Assembly (NCBI RefSeq): GCF_002571385.2
Contig: NW_019218169.1
Location: 197,995-261,994 of the forward strand
Length of the DNA: 64,000 nucleotides
From: Stylophora pistillata
Taxonomy: Eukaryota
Direction: 5' to 3'
This document shows positions 23,801 to 52,326 of this stretch, piece after piece. The notes under the pieces were generated by a model. The model made no database searches, was not told where the DNA came from, and was given only the letters and a program-made list of their open reading frames with translations. Position 1 is the stretch's first letter. The number at the start of each line of letters is the position of its first letter. The translations under genes were made by a program, and so were the position numbers.

Positions 23801-24244
23801 GGTTCTCATCCATGCCTGTATGAATGAAATTAAGTAAGGATGAAAAGATTAGCATTTTCTTTGCAAAGATAGTTGCAGAGAGTGTCTCCACTAATATATG
23901 GATCACCAAACGCTCACAATGAAAGCCAACAAGACCAAGTTTTTGCTAACACATGTAGGACCAATAACTGTTAATAATAGGCAATAGTTTGTACTGAATT
24001 AAGTCTTCATTTGTGCATGAATAAGTATTTATTTCATTTCAATATTTGAACTACACAGTTGAAAAAGCACGTAAAGTGTGGTAACATGTAACATACACAA
24101 TATTCCTTATGATTTAGTTCAAAGAGCTTTACTCTAAATAGATCAAAAGAAAAAAAGTGGCATATGTCAGCCACTCTGATTTACATGGAAAAGCAAATAT
24201 TATTAAGTGAAGAGTAATTTTGCTGCAAATCTGTCCCCTTCTGA

Positions 24245-25390
24245 GCAAGCAAAGAGAATGATTTAGTGCATTGTATTACCCAACTGTTTCTTGCTGGAGC
24301 GCAAGAGACCAGACCTTCATCATACGTGTTAGCGGTTTATGAGTCAACTTTCCAGGATATGTAATGTTTGACATCAACCCTACTAGAATATGAATTTTTG
24401 CGTAGTCCCATACAATTACAATTGTAACGTTTAATAAACCTCCTTTAATACAATTAGCGATGGCGACACTATATCAACACAACAAGATGGCCGACCCGAT
24501 TTTCCCGCTCCCCTCCTTTTGTCGTGGGACGAGACTAGCCTCGTTTCCCAGCAACGTTACACAATGAATACATGTCTTCAATTGTATCCATAATAACTAT
24601 CAATGTAGACACTGAGACTGCTACATGTAACATTGATGATAAATTATATTGAGGCTGAAAGAAAATCAGAAATTTTCGGTCATTGAAACACCGAGATCTG
24701 TCTCGTTTTTTAGTTATGTATCATCTAGTTTTGCATGTCCCAAGCAAAATAAAATAATAAAAAAAAAAAATCACCCCTCGACACAGAAGGATTCAATGAT
24801 TCCAGGTTAGTAGTTACTCGGACGCTTTATCATGCAGGCTCACGAAACCTACAGTATTTAGCCCGAAACTTGAACGCGATCTTTGAGGAATGGTTGTAAT
24901 ATTTTCTGCGTCGTTCTTCATAGCATGCCGACAAGGTGAATCCCATACCTTGTCGGCATGCTTTGAATAACGAGGCAGAAAACAAAAGGATGCATTGTGA
25001 TTCCATGAGATGTAAATAAGTGGCCCTGTATTCTGTAGTTTTACCTGAAATTCTTAACCTTCGAGCGCGGAAATCTTAACGATCTTCTTACAATTTTGCA
25101 TTGCATCCCTCCCCTAGTTGGGAAGTGACAGGCAGAAGACACGTTCACGACGCCTTTTGATTAGAAGAAATAAGTCCGCATCCTATTGGTTATTAGTTAT
25201 GCAGACATGACTGCAACGGAAGACACAACTGCAACGCTACATACAAACAAACAAACACACACAACCCAATATTTCTCCATTCGCTATGACGCATGAAACA
25301 TTGCCTTTGAAAACACCCCCTTTGACCCCTCCGCACCCCGTTTACCCCCTCTTGAAGAAATTACATCATAAGGCTCTCTGGGAAATTGTT
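24245..25390. repeat. Block X, copy 1 (upstream region of P450 #1)
   Basis: Repeated at 35982-37127; no differences seen over the first ~880 bp, ~12 substitutions in the last ~260 bp (counted by eye). Confidence 0.95.
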
Positions 25391-25415
25391 CACTGTTTAA
25401 TTACGACAGGCCGAG

Positions 25416-28400
25416 ATGATCACTACAGCATCTTTTTTCGGACGAGTACCTTGTTCTCATTTGCGCAACTTTTCTCCTATTTCATCTTTGGCGAAAGTTC
25501 ACTTTCAGAGAGCTGAAGCAGCAAACAAGATCACTCCTTCTGAAACCGACATAGAATCGCTGCCGTTTGATGATATCCCAGGACCTCAAGGGAAATATAC
25601 ACCAGCGTTAGGGTTTTATCGCGTTTCTGAAGGATTCACCAAAATTTATAAATTAACAGACAAGCTATTCAAGCAGTATGGCCCAATATTTAAACAGCAT
25701 GTCACCGACAGGAGCCCTGTTGTTCATGTTATGGATCCAGTCGACTTCCAAACCGTGTATCGTGCGGAGGGAAAATATCCATACAGGCCACCGATTGATG
25801 CTATTATGGAAATTCGGAGAAGAAAGGGAATGTTTCTCGGGCTGGAAAATCTGTGAGTACCTTAAATAGTATTCGTTATGTTTTCTCGATCTTCAAATTA
25901 AAAGGTCAGACACCAGACTACTTTGAGGTCGATTGACTTGATATAGTGTGTGCTTTTAAGGTTAAATTTGTTGTCACCCCACTCAGGTACATTACTGACT
26001 GTTGCTTGCGAGTCGGTGTGATATTTAACTGTTTGAATGATGCTATGCGTCAACCTTCACAAATTACACTTCTGCTCGTCACTTTAGTTCGTGGTTACTC
26101 CTTGCAAGTGTTACTAAAATTAGCAAATCGTTTGGGGATTTAATTGAATTCTTTTGAAATTGATTTGTCAAAACAAATTCTTATAACATTCTTTGTTATA
26201 AAAATGTGTCTAATAAGTAATAAGTATACATAAAATGTCATCAAAAATATGATTGATGTAATAAATATATTAATATAAATATAAATATTTCAAATATAAA
26301 TCAATCTTCTCTGAAGAAGGAGCTCAATTTGGTTTTGAATTATATCCATACTTATCTAGTGGATGAAACTGTGGTGGGCTAGCTATTCTACTCTCCAATG
26401 ACCCAAGGAACATAAGAAAATTTGAATACTTCATTGTTTGTCTGTTCGAGATAATAGTTAAAATTATGAGATCTGCAGGTGCGGGTTTCTGATGGTGGTA
26501 TCAAATATTTTGGTTTATCTATATAAATAATGTCATTGGTAAATTTGTACATTGTCATTAAATGGGCTTGGTTTTCAGCAAAGAGCAAGGGATTCCCATT
26601 CCAGGTCTTTCAACATAGTAGTAACACTGTTTAAGCAATAGTGAAATGAAGACCTGAAAAAAAATTCAGGCATGTACAGTCTTAATTTCACTATAATTGC
26701 TTAAATAATGTTCCTCACTGCGAAGATCGTTCTCATAACCGTTTCTTTAACCGCAGTTCAAATATATGATTTTCATATATTCTGAGCAATTATAGTCCCA
26801 TTTATAGAAATGTGCTACTGCTCTCTGTACATTTTCCAATTTCTTTGTATCATATTGGGAGTGTGGCAGTTGGTGGAGGCGAGCTTGCAAAGAGCTTTAA
26901 ACAATCACAGAACATATTTCTCCATCTAGCTACAGGTTGCCTAGCTGCCAGAACATTTCAGGATGTTTCACGTTGTCACAGTGATAAGTATTTTCCCCAG
27001 CACCTATCCTAGTGCTATGTTTCTCTGGTGGGGAGGACAGAAAACATGAAACACTGAGGCTCCAAATGTCAACAGACAAACCTGCAGGAAATGGCAGGTG
27101 ATTGGGATTGGGTGAAGAGGTAGTGTGAGGGCCCTTCTTATAGATTTTTGCCACACCCAGAGTGCACTGAATGTGGGAAGTGAAAGGCAGCACCAGTGTT
27201 ACGAATGATAAGGAAATGGACTATTATTTTCTTTCAGAAAGTATATTTCACCTAGAAACTCTCTTTTGGCAAGAACCTTGAGCTTGCTACCTAATCCTTT
27301 CTCATTCTGTCAGGTTGAAGGCTTTGTACTGAAACAAACTGAGCTTGCTCAAGTTTGTGTGAATTTAAGTAAGAAGCCTTTGCTGTCTGGCTTTTGCATA
27401 ACTTTTTATCAAACTTCTCATTATTATAATTCTAACTTGTTCAATGATAACACATGCAGTCTACAACTTGTCCTCACTTGCACAGCTGTGTAACTGAGAT
27501 TTGAGCAAGAAATATGATGAAACTTGATGTGCAATGGGTCACACACTTTACACACTCTGCTTGTCAAATATTGAGGAGATACGCATCACTCTGCATTATT
27601 AGCTGCAACAGGGACACCAGTGTTATTGATACAAGTTAATGGTTATGTCAAATCTAAACAGGATCAAGATACACCTTTTTTTTTTGGAGTTTGATATAAT
27701 ATATATGTGAGAATTTCAGGGGGTACACAAAGAAAGGTAATTATAACATAACCAAAGTAAAGCGCGCGCTCTGATTGGTCAATTTAGCATCCTCCATTTG
27801 CCCATGGGTGTACGCTGCTGACGTGAGCAAATGCAAAGACTATTTTTCCGCGCGCGCTTTTTTTTTTTCTGGACGCGTAAGATTTGTTAAATAAAAGGGA
27901 ACTCTTTAGCTACAATGTATCAATGTTATGTTATAAAACAAATGGTAAACACCACAGCGTACACTATTGAGTTATGGATGCACTTGGGAGGTTTGCTAAG
28001 CACTCAAGAAGCTACAGTCGCTCTTGGCTATCGCCTCGAGCGACTCTTGCACTTCTTTCATGCTTAGCAACCTCCCGTGTGCATCCATAACTCAATAGTG
28101 TACGCTGTGGTGTTTACCATTTGTTAACTGGTTTTGTGTGAAACAGCAGAAACATCAAACATTTTGATCATGCTCAGACTTGTTCCCTTTACCACTCATT
28201 TGATTTTTTATTTGTCAACTTTCCTGAGTTATCTGGGAGTCACCCAGATAAAGTTCCTTTAAGAGTTACTGCTCTAACTCTTTGATTTTCACCTCACAGA
28301 AACGGTAAAGAATGGCAAAGAATACGACAAGCAGTAGCCCCAAAACTGATGCGTCCAAAAGTGTTGGAGGAAAACATTGACAACTTCAACGCTGTTACAT

Positions 28401-31400
28401 ATGATACACTTAAACGACTTGCTAATCTAAAAGAGACCAGTGGATTGGGAGGAGAAATTCCTGATCTGGAGGGAGAACTGAGTAAATGGGCTACGGAGAG
28501 TAAGTTTGCATGTCTAAACTAAAGAAAGCATCAATTTTTAAAAGATTTCTTGCCCTTTTGGTAATTAAAGGTGGCTATGAATTGATATGTACAGATTTTT
28601 TTGAAAGCTTGGCAAAAACATGAATATTGACGTACTTAGTGAGATGCATTAATTGATAAAAAGTTGTGGTCACTCCCTGGTGTTTGAATAACAGACACGT
28701 TAAGCTAAAATTGAGTGTGTTTCAAAGAGTCTGTAGTATTGCTATCATTATGGTAACCTAATGAGACATAAAGATGATCAAACGTTATTAATAAAAAGTT
28801 AACCTTTCTTAAGACTCTTGGTTTTATTCAAGGGAATATGAAAAATTGAAGTGGTATTGATTAATTAGTTAAATATAAAGAACTGAAGTTTTGAGCCACC
28901 TCATGAAAGTTTTGGTTTTTCTCTTCAAGGATGGTTCTGTGTTTTGGACTTGGGTTTTCTTCAATGCTTTTAGATTGTTAAAAAATCAAGTGTATATTAT
29001 CTTTAGTCCATTATTAAGAGCGACTGACCGTAAATATTGCGAATCCGCCAACAGTTGCAAAATTTTGTAATTCATTTTATTTTTTCTAAACGACAAAATT
29101 AATGAACCTTTTTTGAAAATATATCAAAAAGTTCTATCGCGCTTTTTTTCTCCAAAAAATCGAAAACTTCAAAATACACCTAAATGGCCATTGTCCCCCC
29201 TGTAAAGCAATGAAAAATTAAGCAACTTTGGCAACTTCGTACGCTACACCGCGAAGTAATCCCGCTTTCAAATTTTGTGTGCTAGCAGATGGTTTTTTCA
29301 TCTCTCGGAAAATATTAATTTCTTGTTATGTTGATACATTTATAAGTCTGAACGATGACCAGTTAAAATAAAGTACTTCGAGTTTCTTTCGTGGAGGTAA
29401 AATAAAGGTCAACTTCAGTGGCTTGTGACCAGGTCTGCCATATATACCTAAAAATCATAATATGCATTATCTTTAAGCTTTATTCTTGTATTTTAATTCC
29501 TCCTATGCTCTTTCCAGACCTACCATAAGTGGTATGTCTAGGTGTAAAAGAGTTTGGGCTATTTTGTCAAAAATTCAATGCGAACCGTTGAACAGCTGTC
29601 ACAATTCAAAGGCCTTTAAAAAGGTCTTGTATGATATATTTACAAACCAAAATATATGTTATCTTATAGTTTTATCTTTGTAGTTTAATTCTTCAAAGTT
29701 TCTTTCTTAGCCCACCATAGGCGGTGCATCCAGCTTTTAAAGAGTTTGGGCTAAAAAATGTAATGCGATCCATAGAATGGCTATCACGCAAGAGGTCAAG
29801 GCTAATCTTTCAGCTTGGCAAGGAATGTACCTAATACTTGTGTGACAGCTGTTCAACAGATCGCATTACATTTTTTGTCTTTTTAGCCCAAACCCTTTGA
29901 AAGCTGGACACGCCGCCTATGGCAGGCCAAGAAAGAAACTTTGAAGAATTAAACTACAAAGATAAAACTTAATGAAGATATAATTATATATATTTTTTGA
30001 TTTGTAAATATATCATACAAGACCTTTTTAAAGGCCTTTAAATGGGTCATGACAGCTGTTCAGGGGTTCGTATTGCATTTTTAACAAAATAGCTCAAACT
30101 CTGTTAAACCTGGAAGTGCAGCTTATTGCAGGCTCGAACAGAAAATTGGTGGAATTGAAATACAAGGATAAAGCTTTACAATTATGTACATTAGGATTTG
30201 TAAGTATATATGGCAGACCTGTGTACAGGCCACTGAAGTTTACCTTTATTTTACCTATGTGAAAGAGGCGTGAAGTACTTTGTTTCAACGGGTCATCATT
30301 CAGACTTAAACATAACAACATAACAAGAAATTAATATTTTCCAAGAGACAAAAGGACCATCTGCTAGGACACACAATTTAAAAGTGTGATTACATTGCAT
30401 TGTAGCATACAAAATTGCCAAAGTTGCATAATTTTTCATTGCCTTACGGGGGAGACAACAGCCATTTAGGTGTATTTTGAACTTTTTGATTTTTTGGAGA
30501 AGAAAAAGTGCAATAGAACTTTTTGATATAATTTTTGAAAAAGGTTCATGAAAAGGGTCCTTTGGAAAAAATAAAACGAATTGCAAAATTTTGCAACTGT
30601 TGGCAGATTCTCAATATTTATGGTCAGAGGCACTTAATAAGTGTTTCCTGTTCAAGGATAGGTATATTTTTCTTGACCTCTGTTTTTTTATGTCTAATAT
30701 GTTTGTTTATTTTGTTTATATGTTTTAATTGAGGTGTGGGTACATTGGTATTTGATGTTAGAGTTGGGTTATACAATGATCCACCCAGTGAAGAAGCCAT
30801 GAGGTTCATTGGAGCGATTCATGATGTTTTTCAAAGTCTCCATGCTTTTGTTTTTGGAATTTTGGAGAAACATTTATATCATTACGTGAACACCCCAAAT
30901 TTTGTCAAGCTTGAGCGTGCAGTGGACACTTCATTTGAAATTGGACAAGGATATATTGATAAGAAAATGAAAGATCTTAAAGAAATGGCCCATAAAGGAT
31001 CAGATGATTCTGAAGAACTGAAAGGTAAAATCAGGATTGCAATGATGCCTTAGTCTTTGCTAAAGTGGCTGTGCAAAATTCTGTCCGAGGAGCATTACCT
31101 CTTTCATTCTATTTGCAATGAAATGAGAACCAAGAACAAATCAGGAGAACAAATCCAGTGAGCGGGGTGGAGTGGGTTGAACCAGGGACCACCATAGTTA
31201 AAAGCTTAGCACCCTAAACGCATGACCACTCTTACATATTAAACCATAAGATTCAGAAAAATTGTGTGGCATTTTGAAATGTTAACACACCACAATGAAT
31301 ATCGCCTCCCAACCCATTGCCACAAGTCATAATAGCAACACCACCTACATCTATGACAACTTAGAATTAAGAAGGGTGTTTCCAAGTATTCCCTACCTCA

Positions 31401-34400
31401 AAAAAATTACTACGACTCAAAAGTGCAAATTGTATTCAGTTAGGTCAACCTAGTTTATCAATTCTCTGGTTTTAGGATCAACAAATAAGATGTAAATGTA
31501 CAGATGAGTAATGAACTAACAACCATTTGTTATTTGTTTATTGATAGCTGTTTCGCTTTTAACCTACTTGCTGACACGTGAGGACTTGACCCTGGAAGAA
31601 ATTTATGCCAACGCTTTTACTATGTTTGCAGCAGGTGTTGACACAGTAAGTTGGTTTATTATTCTTTATGTTTTGACAAATTGGTGTCAACTGCTGTTAA
31701 TAGTTACATTATACCTAGTGACAAAACCCAAAGATGAACAAGGAAAAATATTTTTTTACTGGTGAGGAGACGGTATGATCTGTTGAGCTGTGCTAACGTG
31801 ATCATTTAACTTGACAGAAAATGATCTTCGCAACCTTACAAACAGAATCATAAACCCTACATGCTTCATTTAAAAACTGATTTATTAACTTTGACTAGAC
31901 TTGTTTTTTTACCTCTGTGAGTGTACATTTGGCTAATCGTTGCTGTTATCAATGGGCGTGAGCTGGAAATCAAGTGAACCATGCAAGAAATCTTCAACTC
32001 AACAAAAGAACTGCTTAAGTGTACTGCACACTCCCATGCGCATTGAGCCAGTGTCGTTCTCCTGAATTAACTTCTGGCAACATGCTCATCGTTCGTAATA
32101 ACATGTACATGAAAATGCGTGCACAAAAATAAATGAATTTCTAGAAAAGTGATTGCCATGTTCCGACGAGTTATCATTAAGGGCAAAGGGGTTTGGTGAT
32201 TATTTTGGGTAAAAGGATAAATGACAATTGAAGGGTACACTTCTAATCATAAGGGGAATGCAGCACCCAGGTCAAAATTTGGATACCTCTTTCGGGTTCT
32301 TTTGGCCTCTCTACCTCACGCAGGCTTATTTTTTCCTTTAAAGACAAGTTACACCACTCTGTGGACACTGTATCACCTGGCAAGAAATCCTGAAATTCAA
32401 GAAATCCTTTATCAGGAAATATCTAGTATTCTGGGTGAACATGGAGATGCTACGGCTGGAAGTCTTGCGAAATTGTCTTATCTCAAGGCTTGTGCCAAAG
32501 AATCTGCAAGGCAAGTTCATGTTTCAAAGTGGATTTTGCCAGAGAGTGCATTCAAACTTGAATGTACAATCCTGAAGTGATATCTTTTAAACTCTTCCAT
32601 TTCTTTCATAGATTGACACCAGTTTTCCCCTCTAATCGAAGAGTATTGGAGAAAGATGTGGTTTTGAGTGGATATTTGGTTCCTGCACAGGTTTGTACCT
32701 AAAATTAACTTCATACCATCTGCGTCCATTCTTGAACTGGGACGAATTTAGTGCTACTGATGTTTTTTTGTTTAAACAGTGCAGGTTTTGTCACTTTACG
32801 TCTATTTTGTTATCATCATTTTCTTGTCTTTCTTGTCTCCGTTACATGAATCCAAACCATACGGTTAAAGTGCGGTCAGTTCGTTCCAAGTCAGAGGGCC
32901 TGTAGGCAGGGACGACCACTCCACTGATCTTTGGACACGAGGAACCTGCCATAGACATCGTCTTTATTTTGAAGCTCGTTTAGAGCAGTTTTCAACTAAG
33001 TGTCTGAGAACTTAAACCAACTTTATCGCAATTGTTATCTTCTCCATCCTCAATCAGGTTTCCCTTTTGTGGTTTCATCTTACCTCTTTAATGCCGTCTA
33101 CTTCGGCGATAATTTTAATTAATACACGACTCGGGCAGTCAGAGGGCTAATAACTAAAATCAACCAATCAAAGTGCTCTATTGCCGGTCAATATTCTCTC
33201 AGTATTGGACCGGGCACTGTCCCGAATGGTCCCTCGGTCTTTATTGTACGGACCGAGCTGCGCTCGGTCCGTACTGTCAAGACCTCGGCCCGTTATTCTC
33301 CCAGTACGGCCCTCGCGTTTGGTTAATAAGATATATGGCATTCTCATTCTAAGGTTCTCAAAGAGTTTTCTTGGTCTCTGATAATGCTAGTTCTGTCTTG
33401 AAACCTGACTTAACGTGGGTCCAGCGGGGTTAGATATCTTCCAAAGACGTTCATGAGGCGTCGTTTCAGTACCTTAAAGAGGTATCTGCGATGCCTCATG
33501 CGAGGATCACTCATGCGAGGGGTCTTCCTTTCTCTTTGTGAAGTATTGACGGATGACGTCAAGAGAGACCAGTCTGTTTTTTAACTCTCTTGTTTACTTT
33601 TGTTCGTCATAATTTCACAGACCATTATTCAATTGGAATTCCTTGCCACAGCAGCCTCAGAAAAATACTTCAAGAATGCATCAGATTATAAACCTGAACG
33701 CTGGCTGAGAGAAAACAAGAAAGATATTGATTCGTTTGCATTCCTTCCGTTTGGCTTTGGTCCGCGCATGTGCATTGGTGAGTTGTTCTTACTGGCGTTT
33801 AGCGTAAACACGTTCCTTCTTCATAGTAAACTTTTGGTAACTAGAATTCTCCGAACATTAGTTTTTCCGAATCTGCCACGGTGGTCAAATGACTTTTTCA
33901 ATTCGAAAAGTATGTCATTTGGTTCCGATAAAAATTGCTTTTTGCCATCAATGAATTACGTTTACATCCGGGCAGTAACCAAGGGTGTGCACCAAAGAAG
34001 TTTCCAGGTGTCAATGATTTGATCTTCATTATGAAATTAAGTCAGGTCGCCATAGTCAAGAGGTTTACCAGAGAGGAATGGGTGGGGCGATTTTGGAAAC
34101 GTGCCATACTTACCTGTATATATTAACCGTCCCCCGGTTAGCTCAATTGGTTAGAGCGCCAGACTGTTGTGCGGGAGGTCGAGGATTCGAGCCCCGGCCG
34201 GACCAACACTCAACATTTAACCCTCTTAAACACACTTGAAATAACTGAGGAGAATGTGCTACCTTTCTATAATATCAAGAAATGGATAGACATTCTAGTC
34301 TTCTCGGATAAGGACGAATAAACCGTAGGTCCCGTCTCCTGCTTCCATTAATTAGTCAATTTGGTTAGGCCTTGTCATTGTTGACGCGGGATCTACTGTA

Positions 34401-35387
34401 ATTGGCTAAGACTGAAGTAAAATAATTTGAATATATCAACAAAGTTGAAATGGTAAATTGGCCACCGTTACGATTATAAAAGCTGACGTTTCGAGCGTTA
34501 GCCCTTCAGAGCGAAGGGCTTTCGCTCTGAAAACTAGAAACTAGCAGCCTTTAAGACTGTAGTGGTCTCCCTGGCTAAGATAATTAGGTGAAGCTAATAA
34601 AATAGAATAAAATAGTGAAAAAACATGATATAGGTAAACTGCTCAATTGGGAGAAGGACGTACCATGAAAATAAATGGACTCGAATAGATTGATCGGGTT
34701 AAAAAAATTCGTACATTCTCCATAATGTTTTTTTTTTTTTTTTCGGTTTCTGTTACAGGCAGTAGAGTAGCAGAGCTGGAAACATATCTTCTGGTTGCAA
34801 AGGTAGGCAAGTATTTGTTTGGCAACAATGTCCAAAGAAAAAAGATTAGATTAATTACTTTCCACGCTTGCGAACTTACCCCAGAAGTCTGTCATAACCC
34901 ACGCAGAAAGTGTACGGAATCCGTCATCCGGAATGAACCAAGAAGTCTGGCATGGTTTTAAAAAGTATTAGCATGATGTTGAACGCAAAAGCGCAAAAAG
35001 TCTTTTTTGTTTTCCTTTTGCGGTTAGTTATGACATCTCTTTTGAATGAACTTTTGTTGGAGTAGTCATTGAATTATGCAAAATAGAATCGATTTCTACT
35101 TCAGGTTGTGTGAGGGGGTGAGGGGCAACTTGTGTGCAATGTTTGGACTTGTAGCAAGATACTTAATGGGGTCCTATACAGGAAAAATAAAGTTGACAAT
35201 TGTAGAGGCAATAATCCTTTTCCATAGGCCTAGCCATGTTGAGTTCTGATAATAATCCTCGCCGTACACATTGTAGGTTATTCAACGTTTTCGTTTGGAG
35301 TATCACCACGAGCCACTGGAAATGTATCAGAAGCTATCAGCAGTTCCAGAGAAACCCGTCAGGATCAAGTTTGTAGATCGACATTAA
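25416..35387 (+). CDS. Cytochrome P450, mitochondrial clan, paralogue 1, 9 exons
   Basis: Exons 25416-25852, 28300-28499, 30734-31024, 31548-31645, 32344-32510 (GC donor), 32612-32690, 33621-33777, 34759-34802, 35277-35387. Arg/Ser-rich transit-like N-terminus, [28 protein letters not shown] (ExxR), PERW, heme motif [10 protein letters not shown]. Confidence 0.93.
26260..26640 (-). mobile_element. Degenerate LINE 3' fragment
   Basis: ...[11 protein letters not shown]...[12 protein letters not shown] resembles the C-terminal FKxSFFPRTIxEWN motif of non-LTR ORF2. Confidence 0.55.
27738..28127. mobile_element. Non-autonomous element ending in a ~190-bp palindrome
   Basis: AACAAATGGTAAAC...GAGTTATGGATGCAC / GTGCATCCATAACTC...GTTTACCATTTGTT; degenerate relative at ~60190-60400. 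Confidence 0.7.
29014..30637. mobile_element. 1.6-kb foldback element bounded by TTAA (Kolobok/piggyBac-type non-autonomous), P450 #1 intron 2
   Basis: TTAA at 29014-17 and 30634-37; ~780-bp imperfect inverted arms meeting at ~29792-29838; ~195-bp internal repeat in each arm. Confidence 0.85.
34126..34343 (+). mobile_element. tRNA-derived SINE, 3'-truncated
   Basis: Same head and core as the other copies. Confidence 0.8.
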
Positions 35388-35462
35388 AAGGATTATGATC
35401 TCGTTACTCTTGCTAAAACATGTCGGTCACTCTAGTTACACTAGAGTGGCCCTCTTTTTTAT

Positions 35463-35980
35463 ACGGTTGGCGCTGTCAGCTTACCTACTTCAGTTCAATT
35501 CGCTTAGTTTGGAGCACTGAAAAGCGTTGAGGGCCTTTTTCAACGAGAAGGAAAGTTCATCAAAAAACCCGACATTGTGATATTTGTTTTACTCACGACT
35601 GTGGTCAATTACCACAACGCCTACATTGTAAATTTTGCAGATTATTCACGCCTAACATCAATCAGTCGAAAATGCAGCAGACAGTTTTTGGAAATAAAAA
35701 CTCAGTAATTTTAGTCGTCTAGATTTTTTGATAATGTGCATGTGTTTACCTTTGTTGTAGCTTCGATCCATGCTTTCATAGCTTTCCATCTGTTGGGGCA
35801 AAACAACCTTGATGCCTCTTCATTATTACAGCGGAAAAATGCAACCTCGTCAGATTCATTGGCAGGAAAGGGATGAGGGTTAAAAAACATCGCCCGTGAT
35901 TCTAAGATTCGCCTAAATTCTTTAACAGCTTTCATGTTATCATACTGACGTGTGTACAACTTTGCAAGTGATATACCCTG
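35463..35980. repeat. Block Y, copy 1 (holds a duplicate exon of the unknown gene, 35977-35750, minus strand)
   Basis: Repeated at 37658-38175; ~18 substitutions in the first ~230 bp, identical after that up to the N at 35981. Confidence 0.95.
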
Positions 35981-35981
35981 N

Positions 35982-37127
35982 GCAAGCAAAGAGAATGATT
36001 TAGTGCATTGTATTACCCAACTGTTTCTTGCTGGAGCGCAAGAGACCAGACCTTCATCATACGTGTTAGCGGTTTATGAGTCAACTTTCCAGGATATGTA
36101 ATGTTTGACATCAACCCTACTAGAATATGAATTTTTGCGTAGTCCCATACAATTACAATTGTAACGTTTAATAAACCTCCTTTAATACAATTAGCGATGG
36201 CGACACTATATCAACACAACAAGATGGCCGACCCGATTTTCCCGCTCCCCTCCTTTTGTCGTGGGACGAGACTAGCCTCGTTTCCCAGCAACGTTACACA
36301 ATGAATACATGTCTTCAATTGTATCCATAATAACTATCAATGTAGACACTGAGACTGCTACATGTAACATTGATGATAAATTATATTGAGGCTGAAAGAA
36401 AATCAGAAATTTTCGGTCATTGAAACACCGAGATCTGTCTCGTTTTTTAGTTATGTATCATCTAGTTTTGCATGTCCCAAGCAAAATAAAATAATAAAAA
36501 AAAAAAATCACCCCTCGACACAGAAGGATTCAATGATTCCAGGTTAGTAGTTACTCGGACGCTTTATCATGCAGGCTCACGAAACCTACAGTATTTAGCC
36601 CGAAACTTGAACGCGATCTTTGAGGAATGGTTGTAATATTTTCTGCGTCGTTCTTCATAGCATGCCGACAAGGTGAATCCCATACCTTGTCGGCATGCTT
36701 TGAATAACGAGGCAGAAAACAAAAGGATGCATTGTGATTCCATGAGATGTAAATAAGTGGCCCTGTATTCTGTAGTTTTACCTGAAATTCTTAACCTTCG
36801 AGCGCGGAAATCTTAACGATCTTCTTACAATTTTGCATTGCATCCCTCCCCTAGTTGGGAAGTGACAAGCAGAAGACACGTTCACGACGCCTTTTGATTA
36901 GAAGAAATAAATCCGCATCCTATTGGTTATTAGTTGTGAAGACATGACTGCAACGGAAGACACAACTGCAACGCTACATACAAACACACAAACACACACA
37001 ACCCAATATTTCTTAATTCGCTATGACGCATGAAACATTGCCTTTGAAAACACCCCCTTTGACCTCTCCGCACCCCCTTTACCCCCTCTTGTAGAAATGA
37101 CATCATAAGGCTCTCTGCGAAATTGTT
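35982..37127. repeat. Block X, copy 2
   Basis: Starts immediately after the single N; offset 11737 from copy 1. Confidence 0.95.
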
Positions 37128-37332
37128 TGACCAAGCAATCACGTCTCCGCATTTGGCTCTGAAGTTTTCAAGAAAACCGCGTACCTATGTGATCATAACG
37201 TGAAATTAAATATTGTCCACAGAAAAAAACATGGTCCTGTAAATTTTAGTGAAAGCTCTAACACATCGGTTTTCTTTGCACATTTGCCAATGGCGAATTA
37301 TTTATAAGCTCACGACCTCTAAGCGCTCTTTC

Positions 37333-38696
37333 TCACCTCAAGGTGATACCCCGGTAGTTGTTCGTGAGCAGTTGTGGTCCACTCAGTGTACTTTGGTCCA
37401 AAGTTGTCCATAAAAAAAAAAGCAGCATTTGCAGAGAAGGAGTCTGGCTGCTAGCTCTCTTGGATTCAACATACTGGTGAAAAACTGCCCCTGAGTGGTA
37501 CCAGGGAACTACCTTAATTGTACAGTCCGGAATGGTTTTCATTGGTCCATTGCCATAAAATAGCGGAGACAGGTTAGGCCTGATGAATTTCATTGCCTGT
37601 GAATGAAAACCAAATCTGTTGATGTTGATGTTAATGTTGGTAATCGCATGCTTTTTCACGGTTGGCGCTGTCAACGTGTCTACTTCAGTTCAATTCGCTC
37701 AGTTTGGAGCACAGAAAAGCGTTCAGGGTCTTTTTCAACTAGAAGGAAAGTTCATCAAAAAACCCGACATTGTGATAGTTGTGTTACTCACGACTGTGGT
37801 CAATTATCACAACGCCTACGTTGTAAATTTCGCAGATGGTTCACGACTAACATCAATCAGTCGAAAATGCAGCAGACAGTTTTTTGAAATAAAAACTCAG
37901 TAATTTTAGTCGTCTAGATTTTTTGATAATGTGCATGTGTTTACCTTTGTTGTAGCTTCGATCCATGCTTTCATAGCTTTCCATCTGTTGGGGCAAAACA
38001 ACCTTGATGCCTCTTCATTATTACAGCGGAAAAATGCAACCTCGTCAGATTCATTGGCAGGAAAGGGATGAGGGTTAAAAAACATCGCCCGTGATTCTAA
38101 GATTCGCCTAAATTCTTTAACAGCTTTCATGTTATCATACTGACGTGTGTACAACTTTGCAAGTGATATACCCTGGAAGACAGATAAATTGACTACAAGA
38201 TCAAAGTTAGTCCTCAATTTTTCCAACCAGCTTGAAATGTCATAAACTTGCTAGTTACGTCTTTCAACTTCCATCTTGACAATCTCCTCCTCCTCAAAGT
38301 CACCACACGAAATGTATCATTGCATAGCCGTGCTGTAAAGCTCTAAAGAACTTGTGGTGTAAGAACCCATTACATTACAATATTAAGAACTTATGGTGTA
38401 ACAATATTAAAGAACTTATGGTGTAAGATTACATTACATTACCACGTATTTCCAATTCTGCCCGCCGTATGTCCGTCCCTGTTCAATTGTATTACGCACG
38501 GTCTTACGATGGTACACAGCTTGACCTTGCTTAATGTAACGCAACCGGGCTCAAATTGGTTACACATCCTCGGTGGTCCGTAAATATATCTAAAACTAAC
38601 GCTCTGTCGATCATTCCTGTACCCTCCNGGTATGGTTTCCGAACAACACGTGGCGATGAATCGTGTAGAACAGCTGAAGGGCGACTTCCTAGATGT
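37333..38696 (-). CDS. Uncharacterised Cys-containing protein, partial (5' end not located)
   Basis: Four consecutive stop-free phase-0 exons with AG/GT boundaries: 38696-38508, 38342-38259, 38172-37945, 37596-(37333). Translation ...YIYGPPRMCNQFEPGC...SFTARLCNDTF...GISLAKLYTRQY...WIEATTK AMKFIRPNLSPLFYGNGP. No family recognised. Confidence 0.5.
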
Positions 38697-40457: not shown

Positions 40458-42217
40458 TTAGTAAACTACAGCATTAAGTGGATCAGCACGAATACTACTC
40501 AAATCTAGGTTAGAATCTGCTTCCTCATCTATTTCTCCTATGACAGCACTGAAAACAAATAAATTTCAAGACAGGTTTGATAACTTCATCTGTGCATCAA
40601 TTGGCAGCTTGCACACAAATAAAGCATCAGGCAAAGGATTTTCATTGTGCAGGAGGTTGCACCCTTAATGTCACCACAAGGAACAAACAGTTTGAGGGGT
40701 GGAGGAACTTGTGAGGAGCTTGCAAACTTGTGGAAGGTGCCCAGATTAATAAAACTCTGATAATGACTTTGATCAGGTAATTCAAATTTTATAAAGGCTG
40801 ATAGTTTCTAAAGAAACTGTTTGGGGCTGCGTCAGTGGGGGTAACAAAATAATTTGGATATATCAACAAAGTTGAAATGGTAAATTGACCACTGCAATGA
40901 TTACAAAAGCTGACGTTTCGAGCATTAGCCCTTCGTCAGAGCAAAGGGCTAACGCTCCAAACGTCAGCTTTTGTAATCATTACGGTGGCCAATTTACCAT
41001 TTCAACTACGTTGATATATCCAAATTATTCAAATTTTAATTACTCTTTACAAGATCAGGCCTTTACAACATCAGGCCTTTCCACCTGGAAGATAACCCTA
41101 CAAGATAAAAACTTGAGCAGTAAAAATACTTGTATAGGTAAGCATGGGATAAAGTTTTGTGGAGCCTTGATACTAAAAGTATCAACCTTTAATATGATAA
41201 TTGGCTTACATATTGTCTCCTCTTATGATGTAAAGACCCAGCATTACTTGCTCCACTCCACTCCCTGATGAGAACACTCTCTCATGGCTCTCATCCAAAA
41301 TTAAATTCACTGTCTGATCAAACCCTTTGAGGGTTCCCTGAAACAAGTCAACAAATAATTTCTGTAAAGAATTTTACCTACTCTTGAAAAAAAAAAATTG
41401 CTTCTAGTATAAAAAAGAGATGGTAAGGGTATAATTCGCTCTGACGAAGGGTACAATTCGTTCTGACGAAGGGCTAACGCTCGAAATGTCAGCTTTGAAA
41501 CTCTTTAGGGTGGCCAATTTTCGCCATCAACTCAGTTGATAAAACCCAAATTACCTTGTTTCTCTCACCGGTGGGAGTGCAATAAAACCAAAGCTGAACT
41601 TAACAATGGCAACTGCGATCGAGGACAAAGATACATAGGAGAGAACAAATGAGAACTAAAAGAAAAACAAGAAATATCGGTAGAAGAAGCAGAGGAATCA
41701 ACATCTCAGAAGCCTCGCAGTTCGCCAGTCGCCACCACCTAATGGAGTTATTACTGAAGTTACGATTGGTTTTACACTTTCAAAATACATAAAGTAATTT
41801 ACTGCATAATAATTATATACAAAATCTTACCACAATCATTCTTCCATCTTGTGTAATAACTGCTACGGTATCTATATTCTTGTGTTAAGAATGTATACTT
41901 TAACCCAGATCCAGACTTGCGCGTAAGAATGTACAAAGTGCTTTTCTGCCGAAGATCATCCTGCAGATTTCTCAACGCTGCAAATATTCTGAAACATCCC
42001 GTGCGCACATTGGCTAGGGGAACACGCGCGCTGAACAGAATTCGATGGTAGACTGAAAGTATACCAGATCAATCTGATTCAAACATATGCTACCTGAAAA
42101 AGCTATGTGTATTTTCAACCAGTGCATGGGACTCAAAGTAGATAATTTCGATTCTTAATGGAAGCGATTCAGTTTTCAAAGGATACGATTTACATACGTC
42201 TCCAAAGTTGCCGCCAT
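40458..42217 (-). CDS. LSM8: U6 snRNA-associated Sm-like protein LSm8, 96 aa, 4 exons
   Basis: Exons 42217-42187, 41871-41831, 41337-41210, 40548-40458 give MAATLETYVNHTVAVITQDGRMIVGTLKGFDQTVNLILDESHERVFSSGSGVEQVMLGLYIIRGDNIAVIGEIDEEADSNLDLSSIRADPLNAVVY; absent from the ORF track. Confidence 0.97.
40848..41029. mobile_element. Head-to-head pair of Penelope-like fragments forming a 180-bp palindrome
   Basis: AATAATTTGGATATATCAAC... mirrored by ...GTTGATATATCCAAATTATT; same family at ~34420-34530 and ~41433-41535. Confidence 0.7.
40909..40942 (-). ncRNA. Minimal type I hammerhead ribozyme motif (Penelope-type)
   Basis: Minus strand reads GCU-CUGACGA-A-GGGC-UAAU-GCUC-GAAA-C-GUC-AGC: CUGANGA and GAAA cores, stem II, GUC site, GCU/AGC stem I. 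Confidence 0.6.
41460..41493 (+). ncRNA. Second minimal hammerhead-like motif (variant GAAAUGUC)
   Basis: GTTCTGACGAAGGGCTAACGCTCGAAATGTCAGC, preceded by a partial CTGACGAAGGG duplicate. Confidence 0.45.
41872..42186 (-). other. U12-type (minor spliceosome) GT-AG intron 1 of LSM8
   Basis: 5' site GTATCCTTT; branch point TTCTTAAC about 14 nt before the 3' AG. Confidence 0.9.
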
Positions 42218-42365
42218 GTTGGAATGAGAATAATAGCTTTGTAGCCACTCCGTTTATTCTGGAGTAAAGGAAAGCTGCTGAGCATCCGAGCCTTTCAGTC
42301 ATCCCAGAACGAAGGCATAAACGAGAAGGCGCGATTTGACTTCAAAATTTCCTCTTCAGTTGGCA

Positions 42366-43412
42366 ATGGATGGCAGAAAGTGCTTCAAGTGTGGTAAGAC
42401 GGGTCACTTAAAGAGAGATTGCCCCGAAAAGGCAAGCCATAATTTGCAAAATGTGAAATGTTTTGCTTGTGGAAGGCACGGTCATTTTCGGAAGGACTGT
42501 CCCAACATGCTCACTTCTGAGAATACAGCTGACACCGCATCTGCGAGGCACTCAAAAAACTCTGCAAGTAGCCGGCAAATGGAGTTGCAGTTTCCAGTCA
42601 GCAAATCAATGTTTATTGATACTCACTGTCATTTAGAGTATGTTTTCGAAAGACTTAGACACACAGGAAGTTTGAAAGAGTTCCAGACAAGGTATTCCTT
42701 CCCACCAAATTTTGAGGGTTGCATCACAACATTTTGTGATCCCGCAGCTTTTTCGTCCTTTGGCACTTGGTGTGATGTACTTTCGCAAGAGAATGTTTGG
42801 GGAACATTTGGCTGTCATCCTCATAGTGCCAAATATTACAACGATGACTTGGAAGCCAAAATAATTCAGTGTTTGGATCATCCCAAAGCCATTGCCTTAG
42901 GTGAGGTTGGGCTTGATTACTCTTCACATTGCACATCTCCTCCTGAAGTTCAAAAAGAAGTGTTTACTAGACAAGCCAACTGGGCTGTCACACTAGGAAA
43001 ACCTTTGGTTGTCCATTGTCGTGATGCCGAAGCAGACACACTGGAAATACTTAAATCCTGTCTACCACAAGACTGGAAAATCCATTTGCATTGTTACACT
43101 GGATCAAGTGCATTTGCAACGAAATTTTTCCAACAATTTCCAAACCTTTTCATAGGAATGACAGCAGTGGTTACTTTTGGTAAAGCTACAAATATTCATG
43201 AACTTGCATTTGATGTGCCATTAGAAAAGCTATTACTGGAAACTGATGCACCATATTTTGTTCCATCACAAGTGGCTGATAAGCATAACAAGTTCAGCAA
43301 CCCTGGAATGGCAATATTTACTGCTCAGAGAATTGCAGAAATAAGGGGTGTTGCTTTAGAAGAGGTCCTTGAAACAGTTAGAAAGAACACTGCATATGTT
43401 TATGGTATTTAA
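42366..43412 (+). CDS. TATDN2: TATDN2-like TatD nuclease with two N-terminal CCHC zinc knuckles; intronless CDS
   Basis: CFKCGKTGHLKRDC and CFACGRHGHFRKDC, then FIDTHCHL, WGTFGCHPH, GEVGLDY, VHCR, HCYTG, ETDAPY (all metal ligands intact); first in-frame ATG at 42366. Confidence 0.9.
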   Translation: MDGRKCFKCGKTGHLKRDCPEKASHNLQNVKCFACGRHGHFRKDCPNMLTSENTADTASARHSKNSASSRQMELQFPVSKSMFIDTHCHLEYVFERLRHTGSLKEFQTRYSFPPNFEGCITTFCDPAAFSSFGTWCDVLSQENVWGTFGCHPHSAKYYNDDLEAKIIQCLDHPKAIALGEVGLDYSSHCTSPPEVQKEVFTRQANWAVTLGKPLVVHCRDAEADTLEILKSCLPQDWKIHLHCYTGSSAFATKFFQQFPNLFIGMTAVVTFGKATNIHELAFDVPLEKLLLETDAPYFVPSQVADKHNKFSNPGMAIFTAQRIAEIRGVALEEVLETVRKNTAYVYGI

Positions 43413-46771: not shown

Positions 46772-49700
46772 ATGTATTCTTTATCAAGAGTTGCTCTCCG
46801 CAGAAGTCTTCTCCCATGTTATGAAGTGTCAAAACCCTTGAATTCTCTTCTGAGATTTCAGAAAATCGAAGCAGTTTCTGACAGCAGCAGGGATCATGAA
46901 TCCGCAACTCCTGGAGCGAGACCCTTCGAAGACATCCCTGGACGCCCCAAAAACTTAAGATCGATCGCAGAGTCTTACTGGAAAACTAAAGGATTCACTA
47001 AAGGATACAAATTGTGGGATGAACTGTTTCAAAAATATGGCCCCATTTTCAAGGAGTTCGCTGTGATAGGTACACACTCTGTGCACCTTATTGATCCTGT
47101 TGATCAAGAAAAGGCTCTACGTGCTGAAGGAAAATATCCCTCCAGACTAATTGTTGATTTTTGGTTGGAACATCGACAACGAAGAAATTACTTCCCTGGC
47201 ATTGTGCTCTTGTAAGTCACGATTTTTTATGTGTCCAAAACCGTTTTACACTTTGCGTGACATGACGGCGGTATCACCATTTTTGCGTGGTGGAAGGGGG
47301 CCAAGACATGAAGTCTTACTACCAATTAAACAAAACCTAAACAAAGTTTGAGAAAAAATATAGGGTATCTGTCAGACGTTTTCTTAAATTTTGCTGTAGT
47401 TGTATTTATCAAATGCACAGCTGAGTCAGGAGGACAAACAAACACTGACAGAGAAATAGCTGGCGTGATTTAAGAATATTATCTCGCTCAATTAGTTTGC
47501 AACATTTTTTTGTGAATCTGATAGGGAAGGAGAGGAGTGGTACAGAGTGCGACACAGTGTGGCTCCAAAAATAATGCGTCCAAAGATTATGGAGGAGAAC
47601 ATTGATAACTTTACTGCTGTAACAAATGATGCTATTGCAAGGCTTGCCAAACTAAAGGAAGAATGTGGACCTGATGGATACATTCCAGACTTGGAGGAGG
47701 AACTTAGTAAATGGGCTACAGAGAGTAAGTCAATTTAAACTGATTATACTTGAAATAAATGTGAGTGATCTGTGACCTTAAATGTGGTTTAAGTGAAGTT
47801 TCATGGGAAGTAGGAGAGAGATGGTACAACCTCAGCAAAAGTGATCATGGAGCATTTCTTCTTTGCTGACCAGTCATTTTACTCATTACAAGGTTCAGAG
47901 CCATCTAGTAGAGGGCACTGAAATATATGCACAGAAAAGGTTGATCTTCATATGCTGATTACAGTTCAGTGATAAGGAATGTGGGTCACCAGATTTGATT
48001 TTGAGTTCAGGGTTGAGTTCAGAGCCACATAAAGGAAGAGTACAGAGTGTTTCTCAGGGGCTAGCTGTATTGTTGCAAAAACTGGTCACCTAATTTTTTT
48101 AAAAAGAATGCAGGAATATATAGAATTTTCTGATGAATCAAATGTGAATGTGTGGATCAGTTATGATAAAAAAATTGATATTGTACCCAAACATAGATAA
48201 ATGTTACACTTGACTGTCAAAGCTATCAATAAGATGATATCTGCCCCTCTCATCACCAAAGCAAACCTAAGAAAATTGCAAAAAGAGAAAGTCTGGGAAG
48301 GGTTATAAAGCCATCCTATTCCAAATGGGCTGTCACATTTGGCAAAAGCTGACCAGGACCTGGGAATGTGCTTAATATAATATGTGCCTAACAAAATGAG
48401 CTGTGCTCAGCTGCTAGAGGTTGTAAGGTGGATCTGCAAGGCAGAATGGGATCATAGGCTGACCAACTTCTGTAATATGCAGCTACTAGTGATAAAAGCC
48501 ATTTGTGGTAATGAAAAATGTGGCCTTTTTCTCTCATTAATGAGAACATGAAACAATGACAAAAATTGGGCCTTGGGTCATGAGATGGGAAGCGGGATAA
48601 GAGGTGGTGAGGTGGATGTTAGCTGATAGAATGAGACTTTCTCTCAGCAAGATTTTGACCAATGAGTGTTGTTTTTGCTCATGGATTTATTCATTTTAAA
48701 TTTATGTTTTGATTGAAATAGTAATTTAACATTCTCTATATAATTTTTCAAGGTGTGGGAACACTTGCATTTGATTCTCGCCTGGGGCTTTATGAAGACC
48801 CTCCCAAGGAAGAAGCCATGCGATTCATCACAGAGGTTCATAACTTCTTCTCAATCAGCCATAAGTTATTTTTTAGTGTATCAAGGAGAATTGCTAAGAA
48901 CTTCAACATTGATACACCATTACTGAAGAAATTCTTCAAAACTGCTGATGCCCTTATAGAAATTGGGGAAGGTTTTGTGGATAAGAAGATGAGAGAATTA
49001 AAAGAAATGTCAGATAAAGAAATTGACCCCTCTGGCAACACTCAAGGCAAGTATTCAGTTAGATATCTCTTTGAAACTGATTTATGAATGTATATGATTA
49101 TTACATAGTGTTGTATATAAGTCTATGAGTGTGTAATTGAAATAAATGACAACTGCAGCAGTTTGTGTACATTGAACATTATGATTATCTTTGAAATGAT
49201 TTAAAAGAATATAATCACTACTTAATTCCCAACTTTTCTTCAATCATTTTCATCTATCATTGTCTAACTGTCTTTTATTTTCTTGCAGTTGTTCCATTGT
49301 TGACCTACCTGCTCACAAAGAAGGAACTGACTCCTCAAGAGGTTGTGGGTGTTGTTCTTGATGTTGTGGGCGCAGGAGTTGATACAGTTAGTGACATCAT
49401 AATGTTTCTTTCAATTTAACAACATGAGTAGAAAAATGTGAAGTGTTTTCCTGTTGGTAGATATAGTGTTCCTAAGTACTGTTTCCAGGGTTGCTAATAA
49501 GCAACATTAACCCTTCAAATCAGAGGATACAGAATATGAGTACAACTTAATCCTTCAACCCCCAAATTTTATTAACTTGTGACTCATCCAAGCAATTCCT
49601 TCAAGTTGTCCAGAAAACAGGTTATATGCAAACAGACAAGCTCATTGGCTAGGGGTTGTTATCTTGAAATCTCCAATCTGATTAACAAGGAAGTGTGTAG

Positions 49701-52049
49701 CATTTAGTAGGAAGAAGTAGTACCATAAATCCTCTATTAAATCCCCCTCTCAAATAAGCCCCCCTCTCTAATAAGCCCCCCTTCTCAAATAAGCCCTGCC
49801 TCTCAAATGAGCCCCCCTCTCTAATAAGCCCCCCTTTCAAATAAGCCCCCTCTCTCAAATAAACCCCCTCTCTCAAATAAGTCCCCCCTCTCTAATAAGT
49901 CCCCCTCTCAAATAAGCCCCCTTTCTCAAATAAGCCCCCCTCTTAAATAAGCCCCCCCTCTCGAATAAGCCCCCCTCTCTAATAAGCCCCCTGATCACTG
50001 TCATGGTACACTTGAGCATGTACACTGTATCAGACCGCTATGGGTGATGTCACTGTCATTCATCACTGTCATGGTACACTTGAGCATGTACACTGTATCA
50101 GACCGCTATGGGTGATGTCACTGTCATTGATCACTGTCATGGTACACTTGAGCATGTACACTGTATCAGACCGCTATGGGTGATGTCACTGTCATTGATC
50201 ACTGTCATGGTACACTTGAGCATGTACACTGTATCAGACCGCTATGGGTGATGTCACTGTCATTGATCACTGTCATGGTACACTTGAGCATGTACACTGT
50301 ATCAGACCGCTATGGGTGATGTCACTGTCATTGATCACTGTCATGGTACACTTGAGCATGTACACTGTATCAGACCGCTATGGGTGATGTCACTGTCATT
50401 GATCACTGTCATGGTACACTTGAGCATGTACACTGTATCAGACCGCTATGGGTGATGTCACTGTCATTGATCACTGTCATGGTACACTTGAGCATGTACA
50501 CTGTATCAGACCGCTATGGGTGATGTCACTGTCATTGATCACTGTCATGGTACACTTGAGCATGTACACTGTATCAGACCGCTATGGGTGATGTCACTGT
50601 CATTGATCACTGTCATGGTACACTTGAGCATGTACACTGTATCAGACCGCTATGGGTGATGTCACTGTCATTGATCACTGTCATGGTACACTTGAGCATG
50701 TACACTGTATCAGACCGCTATGGGTGATGTCACTGTCATTGATCACTGTCATGGTACACTTGAGCATGTACACTGTATCAGACCGCTATGGGTGATGTCA
50801 CTGTCATTGATCACTGTCATGGTACACTTGAGCATGTACACTGTATCAGACCGCTATGGGTGATGTCACTGTCATTGATCACTGTCATGGTACACTTGAG
50901 CATGTACACTGTATCAGACCGCTATGGGTGATGTCACTGTCATTGATCACTGTCATGGTACACTTGAGCATGTACACTGTATCAGACCGCTATGGGTGAT
51001 ATCACTGTCATGGATCACTGTTGTGGTACACTTGAGCATGTGCACTGTATCAGACTGTTATCGGTGATATCACTGTCATGGATCACTGTCATGGTACACC
51101 TTTAGCATGTACACTGTATCAGACTGCTATGGGTGATATCACTGTCACTGAGCACTGTTGTGGTATACTTGAGCATGTACACTGTATCAGGCTGCTATGA
51201 GTGTTATCTCCAATCTAATGGCTGCCACAAGACTTAGTGTCACAGTCTTAAGAGAAATTTTTATGGTAGTCTGACACAACGTGTGCATTATTTTTAACAC
51301 CTAAGTGACATGACCTTCATCATGTTTAACAGGAATGAACCTGGTTCATTAAATGGGTATTAACAATCAACTGTTACTGTTGCTAAGTATTGAATTAAGG
51401 CTATGTATAATGCTTGTAGTGTAAATCTTTGGGAATAAGTGTATATAGTCAGTTAGAAGCTATTTAATGATCAAATGTTTCTCTTTTTCCTCTTTTTATA
51501 ACACAGACGGCAAATACTACTTTGTGGATGTTATATAATTTAGGAAGAAATCCACGCGTGCAAGACAAACTCTATCAGGAGGTGGATAGTGTTGTTGGAA
51601 AGGATGCAGATGTCACCTCTCAGAGTCTTGCAAAATTGTCATATCTGAAGGCTTGTCTAAAAGAAACAATGAGGTAAACTTACTACCCCTTAATGAGAAA
51701 CGATTGGGTAATTTTTTCAAATTGGAAGCATTGTAGGATGGAGTGGCACACCCATTTATTTACTTTACGACAAAACATGAACTGTGCCAGTTTTAATCTT
51801 CTCTGTTCTTACATTTTTGTGAAAAGATTACACCCAGTTGTTTCCGCCAACAGTCGAATATTGGATGAGGATATTGAGTTGCGTGGCTATCATGTGCCAG
51901 CAAGAGTGAGTCTTTGTTAGTTTTTTTACTACATATATCTTGTTGAGTGCGGTGTTGCCATTTGTAATTATCATGATAAATAATGACAAAGATAACAGTA
52001 ATAAGGATTATGATAAAGGTGATTGCCATCAACAAATACACTAATCCCT

Positions 52050-52093
<44 letters not shown>

Positions 52094-52167
52094 GATTGGC
52101 TCAGCCATTATGGTATATCAGCCAATATACCATAATCTAATTTCTGTACATTGTTAAATCCGGTTTC

Positions 52168-52200
<33 letters not shown>

Positions 52201-52285
52201 ATAGTTTGGGGGCGTTTTTTTTTTTAATAAAACAATTATTCCACTCGCATTTGTTGGATGAGATAACTATAGCCAACTCGGTGCT

Positions 52286-52326
<41 letters not shown>

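Follow-up and report, generated by a model that had tools for sequence, protein, structure and literature searches.

Assemblies may contain false heterotype duplications, in which two versions of one locus stand side by side, and the hallmarks of such duplications are a gap between the copies and half the usual depth (Ko et al., 2022, PMC9516828); coral assemblies are known to suffer from allelic duplications (PMC10236652). A locus that resembles them lies in a 64,000 nt stretch of the Stylophora pistillata genome (NCBI RefSeq assembly GCF_002571385.2, contig NW_019218169.1, positions 197,995 to 261,994 of the forward strand), which we call the window and whose own numbering is used throughout. 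Here a segment carrying a complete P450 gene (P450 #1) and a short segment unrelated to it follow one another, each between closely similar flanks. We think it probable that this is a false heterotype duplication, in which a heterozygous replacement variant (P450 #1 present or absent) has been laid out in tandem by the assembly.

As in the described cases (PMC9516828; for corals, PMC10236652), the two versions lie on the same scaffold with a gap between them (the N at 35981), the flanks are identical where the haplotypes would agree, the version-specific parts may have roughly half the depth of the shared parts (to judge by contig word depth, which is ambiguous), the break falls at the boundary between homozygous and divergent sequence, and both versions are present in the individual taken as the one sequenced. 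The locus departs from the usual false heterotype duplication in that the versions differ by a non-homologous replacement (10 kb versus 0.5 kb) rather than by divergence at the level of single-nucleotide polymorphisms (SNPs), and in that the join was possibly guided by a transcript with a long 3′ untranslated region (UTR), a route that we did not find described in the literature consulted. There is also a likeness to the presence/absence variation of P450 genes, since one version has an entire P450 gene that the other lacks, and the gene lies in a small tandem P450 cluster. Unlike plain presence/absence, however, the segment that varies corresponds almost precisely to the coding unit, and unlike a plain deletion the gene-less version carries unrelated old sequence; the versions compared here are moreover only probably allelic. 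If the versions are allelic, they further recall the idiomorphs of fungal mating-type loci, in which unrelated sequences lie between shared flanks and divergence is raised at the breakpoints. The two segments are indeed non-homologous, but only one of them has a functional gene, the other holding an apparently dead exon, and there is neither a link to mating or compatibility nor evidence of balancing selection.

The layout was obtained from a self-BLAST of the window and a base-by-base comparison of the copies. It follows the order X-A-Y-N-X′-B-Y′ (Table 1), where X and X′ are the left flanks, Y and Y′ the right flanks, A the segment with P450 #1 and B its counterpart in the second version; W denotes the sequence upstream of X, and Z the sequence that follows Y′. 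A sequence-only reading of the window had proposed the same arrangement, X-[P450]-Y-N-X′-[~530 bp]-Y′, which both comparisons reproduce, and its coordinates agree with ours apart from the start of Y, which it placed at 35463, a few bases too late. The alignment of X with X′ can be extended back to 24241/35978 by way of a shared CTG and stops abruptly at 25391/37128. There are no differences in the first 886 nt and 12 mismatches at 25131-25381, or 4.6 % of the final 260 nt. Between Y and Y′ there are 19 mismatches and one indel, all within the first ~235 nt (about 8 %), and the next 290 nt are identical. The divergence of 5-8 % near the breakpoints between otherwise identical flanks, as claimed from the sequence alone, is thus seen, in the inner 235-260 nt only. 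Chance is far too small to produce repeats as long and as alike as X/X′ and Y/Y′. No homology was found between A and B in a sensitive search (best E-value, 0.015), and the possibility that B is a diverged remnant of A was rejected on this ground.

The distribution of these differences favours alleles, since no difference is seen in the outer flanks as far as their outer ends (0/886 and 0/290), divergence being confined to the neighbourhood of A and B. Between duplicated copies both edges of a block should escape gene conversion, whereas between alleles homology continues outward; such a pattern is to be expected of alleles that recombination has shuffled, and not of the edges of a duplicated unit. 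The level of divergence at the breakpoints hints at the age of the variant.

Evidence from DNA was taken from Logan contigs of public runs together with their per-contig word depth, and it should be borne in mind that such contigs show the presence of a sequence and cannot prove that a junction is absent. The DNA runs are X1, X3 and X8 and the RNA run is X9; three DNA samples are represented, including S1, S3 and the independent S4 (run X8). X1 is taken as the source sample of the assembly, as it has four runs, matching the four paired-end libraries described by PMC5730576. A contig across the A/Y junction (34728-35575) and one that spans X′-B-Y′ in a single piece (37035-37770) were found in S1 and S3 and are identical to the reference there; X1 has both, and the spanning contig occurs in runs X1 and X3. 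Sample S4 also has A and B, with SNP differences that reach 2.7 % in Z.

The contigs bear directly on the possibility that the duplication is real and exactly as drawn, with X′ following Y directly by way of the CTG that the two share. This arrangement is the assembly layout itself, the shared CTG provides a 3-nt microhomology at the Y|X′ join, a contig of X3 has one of its ends precisely where X′ starts, and the order seen would follow from one complex template-switching event with X-A-B-Y as the ancestral state. However, among the contigs listed for the four runs none crosses Y-N-X′, whereas the end of Y/Y′ continues into Z without a break at 38175/38176 in all three DNA runs (X1 record 7, 37847-38625; X3 record 15, 37967-38627; X8 record 23, 38107-38444), and the Y+Z contig of X1 carries the version-1 allele at 37885. 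The DNA contigs show no fork at the passage from Y/Y′ to Z, though a real Y/X′ junction would make one, and the tandem junction as drawn is thus unsupported. The P450 transcript likewise passes from Y to Z, X3 record 15 has a depth of 151, much more than the 105 predicted under this arrangement, and it is the inner rather than the outer edges of the copies that have diverged. A true tandem duplication in this form, the other option offered by the sequence-only reading, is therefore disfavoured, and we regard it as extremely unlikely.

Some further features of the ends of the flanks may be mentioned. At 38172-38175 the end of Y/Y′ is separated by 3 nt from an exon boundary that is conserved in the DUF885 family (ttccag|GG, minus strand), and the start of X (24241-24244) resembles a minus-strand acceptor (tgctcag|AAGG). 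The CTG shared at the join is the complement of the CAGs at the end of Y/Y′ and at the start of X, for which we can offer coincidence as the only explanation.

Table 1. Coordinates in the window of the two versions of the locus, of P450 #1 and P450 #2, and of associated repeats and relic exons
Feature	Position	Strand	Remarks
Transposon-like repeat	23900-24422		continues through the start of X (24245) without a break
X, left flank of version 1	24245-25390		mostly a repeat mosaic; final ~148 bp unique
A, version-1-specific segment with P450 #1	25391-35455	+	10,065 bp
P450 #1 coding sequence	25416-35387	+	9 exons, GT-AG introns, 533 open codons
P450 #1 exons 1-5	25416-25852, 28300-28499, 30734-31024, 31548-31645, 32344-32528	+	
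P450 #1 exons 6-9	32612-32690, 33621-33777, 34759-34802, 35277-35387	+	
Y, right flank of version 1	35456-35980		transcribed within the P450 3′ UTR; has a copy of the putative DUF885-family relic exon
Putative relic exon, DUF885 family, copy in Y	about 35749-35977	-	
Single N	35981		separates Y from X′
X′, left flank of version 2	35982-37127		match to X
B, version-2-specific segment	37128-37651		524 bp
Putative relic exon, DUF885 family, in B	37325-37602	-	internal; frames 37602-37411 and 37417-37325; GTGAGA donor
Y′, right flank of version 2	37652-38175		match to Y
Putative relic exon, DUF885 family, in Y′	37944-38172	-	acceptor ttccag/GG, donor AAAG/GTAAAC
Z, single-copy sequence 3′ of Y′	38176-38627	+	continues Y in DNA contigs and in the P450 transcript
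Second single N	38628		true gap
P450 #2	46877-55380	+	exon plan as in P450 #1; 60 % identity in the haem exon

How the two versions could have come to stand in tandem is suggested by a published assembly procedure that appears to be the one used here, namely ALLPATHS-LG with HAPLOIDIFY, then L_RNA_Scaffolder with Trinity transcripts, and three rounds of SSPACE and GapFiller (PMC5730576). L_RNA_Scaffolder joins fragments that hold successive parts of a transcript and sets the gap to the median intron length minus the inter-exon distance (PMC3846640). GapFiller extends the edges of a gap base by base, halts at allelic ambiguity and closes the gap only if there is an overlap of at least 10 nt (PMC3446322), and identical flanks that end at one N are compatible with this behaviour. 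The RNA contig X9 record 27 joins 33616-33776, 35275-35690 and 37886-38549, and so links A, Y and Z. We suggest that the colony sequenced was heterozygous here, its two haplotypes differing by a replacement variant at a single locus. The first, haplotype 1, would be W-X-A-Y-Z, with a complete and expressed P450 #1, and haplotype 2 would be W-X′-B-Y′-Z, which lacks P450 #1 and has in its place 524 bp that include one exon of a DUF885 fragment, now dead. Both versions would have been retained by the assembler as separate contigs, each with the homozygous outer flanks. The long 3′ UTR of the P450 mRNA runs through Y into Z, but Z would be present in the haplotype-2 contig only, 2.2 kb from its start, the haplotype-1 contig ending with Y; a scaffolder guided by this transcript may then have set the haplotype-1 contig before the haplotype-2 contig with the minimal gap of one N.

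Of the two options left by the sequence-only reading, two alleles placed in tandem by the scaffolder is thus the better supported, by the position of the junction at a gap, the lack of a crossing contig, the continuity of Y with Z, the pattern of the flanks and the published pipeline, whose transcript-guided scaffolder would give such an order. It falls short of proof because a real duplication of a larger unit, discussed below, keeps an appreciable probability.

A junction at a gap, in an assembly whose pipeline includes transcript-guided joins (PMC5730576), might also mean that two unlinked paralogous loci were wrongly joined, so that the two halves of the window are not genomic neighbours, and L_RNA_Scaffolder is able to make such wrong relocations (PMC3846640). 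We consider this very unlikely, as P450 #1 and P450 #2 are on the same strand 11.5 kb apart and share an exon plan, as tandem paralogues do, the identity of the flanks over 886 and 740 nt is unlike that of dispersed old paralogues, and no further X..Y copy was found in the assembly.

In 200 kb of the genome surveyed there are only five gaps of a single N, and the signature described here is seen at this one only, which is too few for any conclusion. One-sided versions of it occur at gaps of 1898 N and 49 N in two other stretches, L044 (G000:C1:1180001-1190000) and L053 (G000:C1:1360001-1370000), where one flank has a copy 2-3 kb away beyond the gap.

Contig word depth is ambiguous and differs between runs, and it was not used as a decider. 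In X1 the A- and B-specific contigs have depths of 15.7-18.3 against 28.5 for the shared Y+Z; in X3 the values are 66-86 for A, 93 for B, 151 for Y+Z and 80 to the right of the gap at 38628. The specific contigs thus have 0.43-0.64 of the depth of the shared sequence in X1 and X3, the ratios in X8 being different. At the 38628 gap the flanking contigs extend by 24 (X3) and 49 (X1) letters that do not match the reference, which indicates a true gap. A shift in contig depth across 38628 is seen in two of three runs.

Several observations weigh against allelism. Right of the 38628 gap the contig reaches only 0.53 (X3) or 0.74 (X1) of the depth of Y+Z, which fits a duplication unit ending at that gap, although the value in X8 is 1.0. 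In X3 a Logan contig has the first base of X′ (35982) as its own first base, which amounts to a fork in the read graph, although high-copy repeat words at this place (depth 461-1755) provide an alternative cause for the break. The independent sample S4 (X8) has A as well as B, as a fixed duplication always predicts and a polymorphism predicts in heterozygotes only. Finally, allelism gives no reason for the haplotype-1 contig to stop precisely where Y ends, at a distance of 3 nt from an old exon boundary.

These points lend themselves to a different explanation, in which the duplication is real and on one chromosome, the unit being larger than was assembled and including part of W, X, Y, Z and the sequence in the 38628 gap. 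Copy 1 would have kept the P450 gene and lost B, copy 2 would have kept B and lost the P450 gene, and the N at 35981 would hide a copy of Z. The depths in X3 fit this well, the read graph forks both at the start of X′ and at about 38628, both versions occur in all the DNA samples examined, and tandem duplication is pervasive in coral genomes (PMC10236652). It requires, however, a duplication, two deletions and a gene conversion that equalized the outer flanks and yet spared an inner divergence of 5-8 %. The lengths of the gaps in this assembly are estimates, with runs that vary from 1 to 1898 N, so that at least 450 bp of hidden sequence should not be represented by one N, and the gap-filling step should have added Z behind Y. 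The depths in X1 and X8 do not fit, the ratio of shared to specific sequence being 1.7 rather than 2 and Z being, in X8, as deep as the sequence right of the gap. The 397.6-Mb assembly was searched for a second copy of that sequence and none was found, nor do Y, Z and B have any other copy there. We therefore hold a duplication of a larger unit to be possible, though rather unlikely.

An old polymorphism maintained with suppression of recombination, as had been proposed from the sequence alone, would possibly fit the divergence at the breakpoints. In its fuller form A and B would be old, non-homologous alleles found across divergent Stylophora lineages, with P450 #1 present or absent, long-lived and possibly balanced, recombination having eroded all but the 250 bp adjoining the breakpoints, and both the sequenced colony and the sample with 2.7 % differences in Z would be heterozygotes. 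This we consider doubtful.

For users of the reference, 35982-38175 is probably a second allele of 24245-35980 and not extra genome. If the arrangement is an artefact, it has introduced a false duplicate of the promoter-side flank and of a relic exon that may inflate counts of duplications, and it has split the 3′ UTR of P450 #1 by a false ‘intron’ of 2.2 kb. It also suggests a mode of failure, in that transcript-guided scaffolding can stack haplotigs where a UTR outruns one of them. As an artefact it is of an ordinary kind and of moderate local interest, with nothing surprising in kind. The biology to which it points is that of a whole P450 gene without which some chromosomes exist, which may bear on variation in sterol or xenobiotic metabolism.

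The P450 gene in A is intact. The sequence-only reading had recognized a complete gene running from 25 nt before its ATG to shortly after its stop codon (~75 nt), and this is borne out by an open frame of nine exons, with the ATG at 25416, 25 nt inside A, and the stop codon at 35385-35387, 68 nt before its end. The exons match Pfam PF00067 one by one (best E-value, 2.4e-16), exon 7 encodes a ten-residue Cys-haem ligand motif of the FxxGxRxCxG type, and residues 32-530 of a 531-aa relative, which came from a full-library search, align by tblastn to nine blocks in A and also to P450 #2; profile, haem motif and full-length frame thus all agree with membership of the P450 family. The joined exon model served for a local check of the reading frame only and was not searched as a joined sequence. 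The last three exons are spliced and expressed, since X9 record 27 joins 33616-33776 to 35275-35690, and the 44-nt exon 8 agrees in length with 43 letters of this RNA contig that are otherwise unplaced.

The best matches of exon 1 and of the haem exon in the structure database are to CYP11A1, CYP11B1 and CYP24A1, and since these are the nearest solved structures P450 #1 appears to belong with the mitochondrial clan. It is like CYP24A1, CYP11A1 and CYP11B in its best structure matches, haem motif and length (~533 aa), but identity to them is low and we claim no orthology to a named CYP family. No copy in the genome is closer to P450 #1 than P450 #2, and the two are an old tandem duplicate pair. 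We also considered whether A might be a mobile element, and rejected this because its ends lack inverted as well as direct repeats, because there is no target duplication, and because it is not homologous to B. Intron 2 of P450 #1 contains a 1.6-kb stretch (29011-30640) that is 81.6 % self-complementary and consists of two inverted repeat copies; P450 #2 has a similar inverted pair (53508-54055 and 54636-55205, 87 %).

The content of B and of the adjacent flank is of a different nature. The minus-strand ORF of Y/Y′ has 25 paralogues in the genome with 31-49 % identity, whose open frames begin at positions corresponding to 38172-38178, and a scan of JGI metagenomes with the Y exon returned only paralogues of 36-43 %. 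The minus-strand ORF of B has five genomic matches, each of them preceded on its own strand by a Y-like exon at a distance of 0.2-0.9 kb. The paralogue in L018, with which the B exon was compared, has a DUF885 profile with the motifs HESRPGHHTQ and RY..PGQA. In B the first of these is degenerate (HEQLPGYH, a remnant of HExxPGHH), and at a run of ten A residues the B exon passes from one reading frame to another relative to its paralogues. This frame change could be real or a homopolymer error; the run lies at 37413-37422, and run X8 has A>C at 37417.

The order and spacing of the exons in B and Y/Y′ are the same as in the DUF885 paralogues, but only these two exons of the family are present in the window, that with RY..PGQA and all others being absent, the frame is apparently broken, and neither exon gives a Pfam hit, so that their homology is visible through the paralogues only. 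PF05960 has no match on this scaffold among at least 74 exon-level matches in the genome. The exons in B and Y/Y′ are a two-exon gene fragment, or relic, and not a gene. The last exon of an unknown gene that had been noticed in B is thus an internal exon with its own GTGAGA donor, and the suggestion that each haplotype keeps one gene of a convergent pair is not supported, as only the P450 is a gene. A live ‘unknown gene’ was rejected, since the window has just two exons of the family, with an apparent frameshift and with neither 5′ nor 3′ exons, and since B is not covered by RNA in run X9. The family itself (bacterial-type DUF885, PF05960) is much expanded in this coral, and the matches form tandem clusters, several with stop codons, on scaffolds C31 (about 821-936 kb), C39, C22, C176, C570, C186, C414, C40, C59 and C94.

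These relationships suggest an order of events. ORFs of related corals (the P0002 cluster and P0003) run from a Y-like exon into B-like sequence in one piece, so that the adjacency of B and Y would be the older state and the A/Y junction would be derived. P450 #1 is an old gene, and its absence from haplotype 2 would thus be a deletion. With both the gene and the B-Y adjacency old, each version seems to carry one derived junction, and the simplest account of the origin of the two is a pair of deletions from X-P450-...-B-Y. The upstream extensions of the exon-1 ORFs of relatives of the P450 gene have no homology to X, and hence are uninformative about the X|A junction.

X is presumed to be the promoter region of P450 #1. 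The repeat that crosses the start of X has copies on five other scaffolds, aligned over its full length with 78-83 % identity; because a repeat family bridges the W/X boundary, W-X is the natural order and X′ begins in the middle of an element, which is truncated there. More generally, W and most of X (23900-25242) form one repeated element of at least 1.3 kb, parts of which recur in the same order on many scaffolds with 78-90 % identity, so that the sequence upstream of the start of P450 #1 is mostly transposon-derived. There is a 140-bp insert in this element at 24423-24562, with copies at 96 %, and a high-copy 200-bp element lies within X at 25046-25242.

Elsewhere in the window, the intron of P450 #2 between the exons at ~49410 and ~51498 holds two adjoining tandem arrays, one with an 18-bp unit (14 copies, 49743-49991) and one with a 68-bp unit (17.8 copies with 97 % matches, 49992-51203). 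Between the two P450 genes, an LSM8-like exon on the minus strand (41206-41346) stands head to head with an intronless zinc-knuckle/TatD-like ORF of 358 aa on the plus strand (42336-43412).

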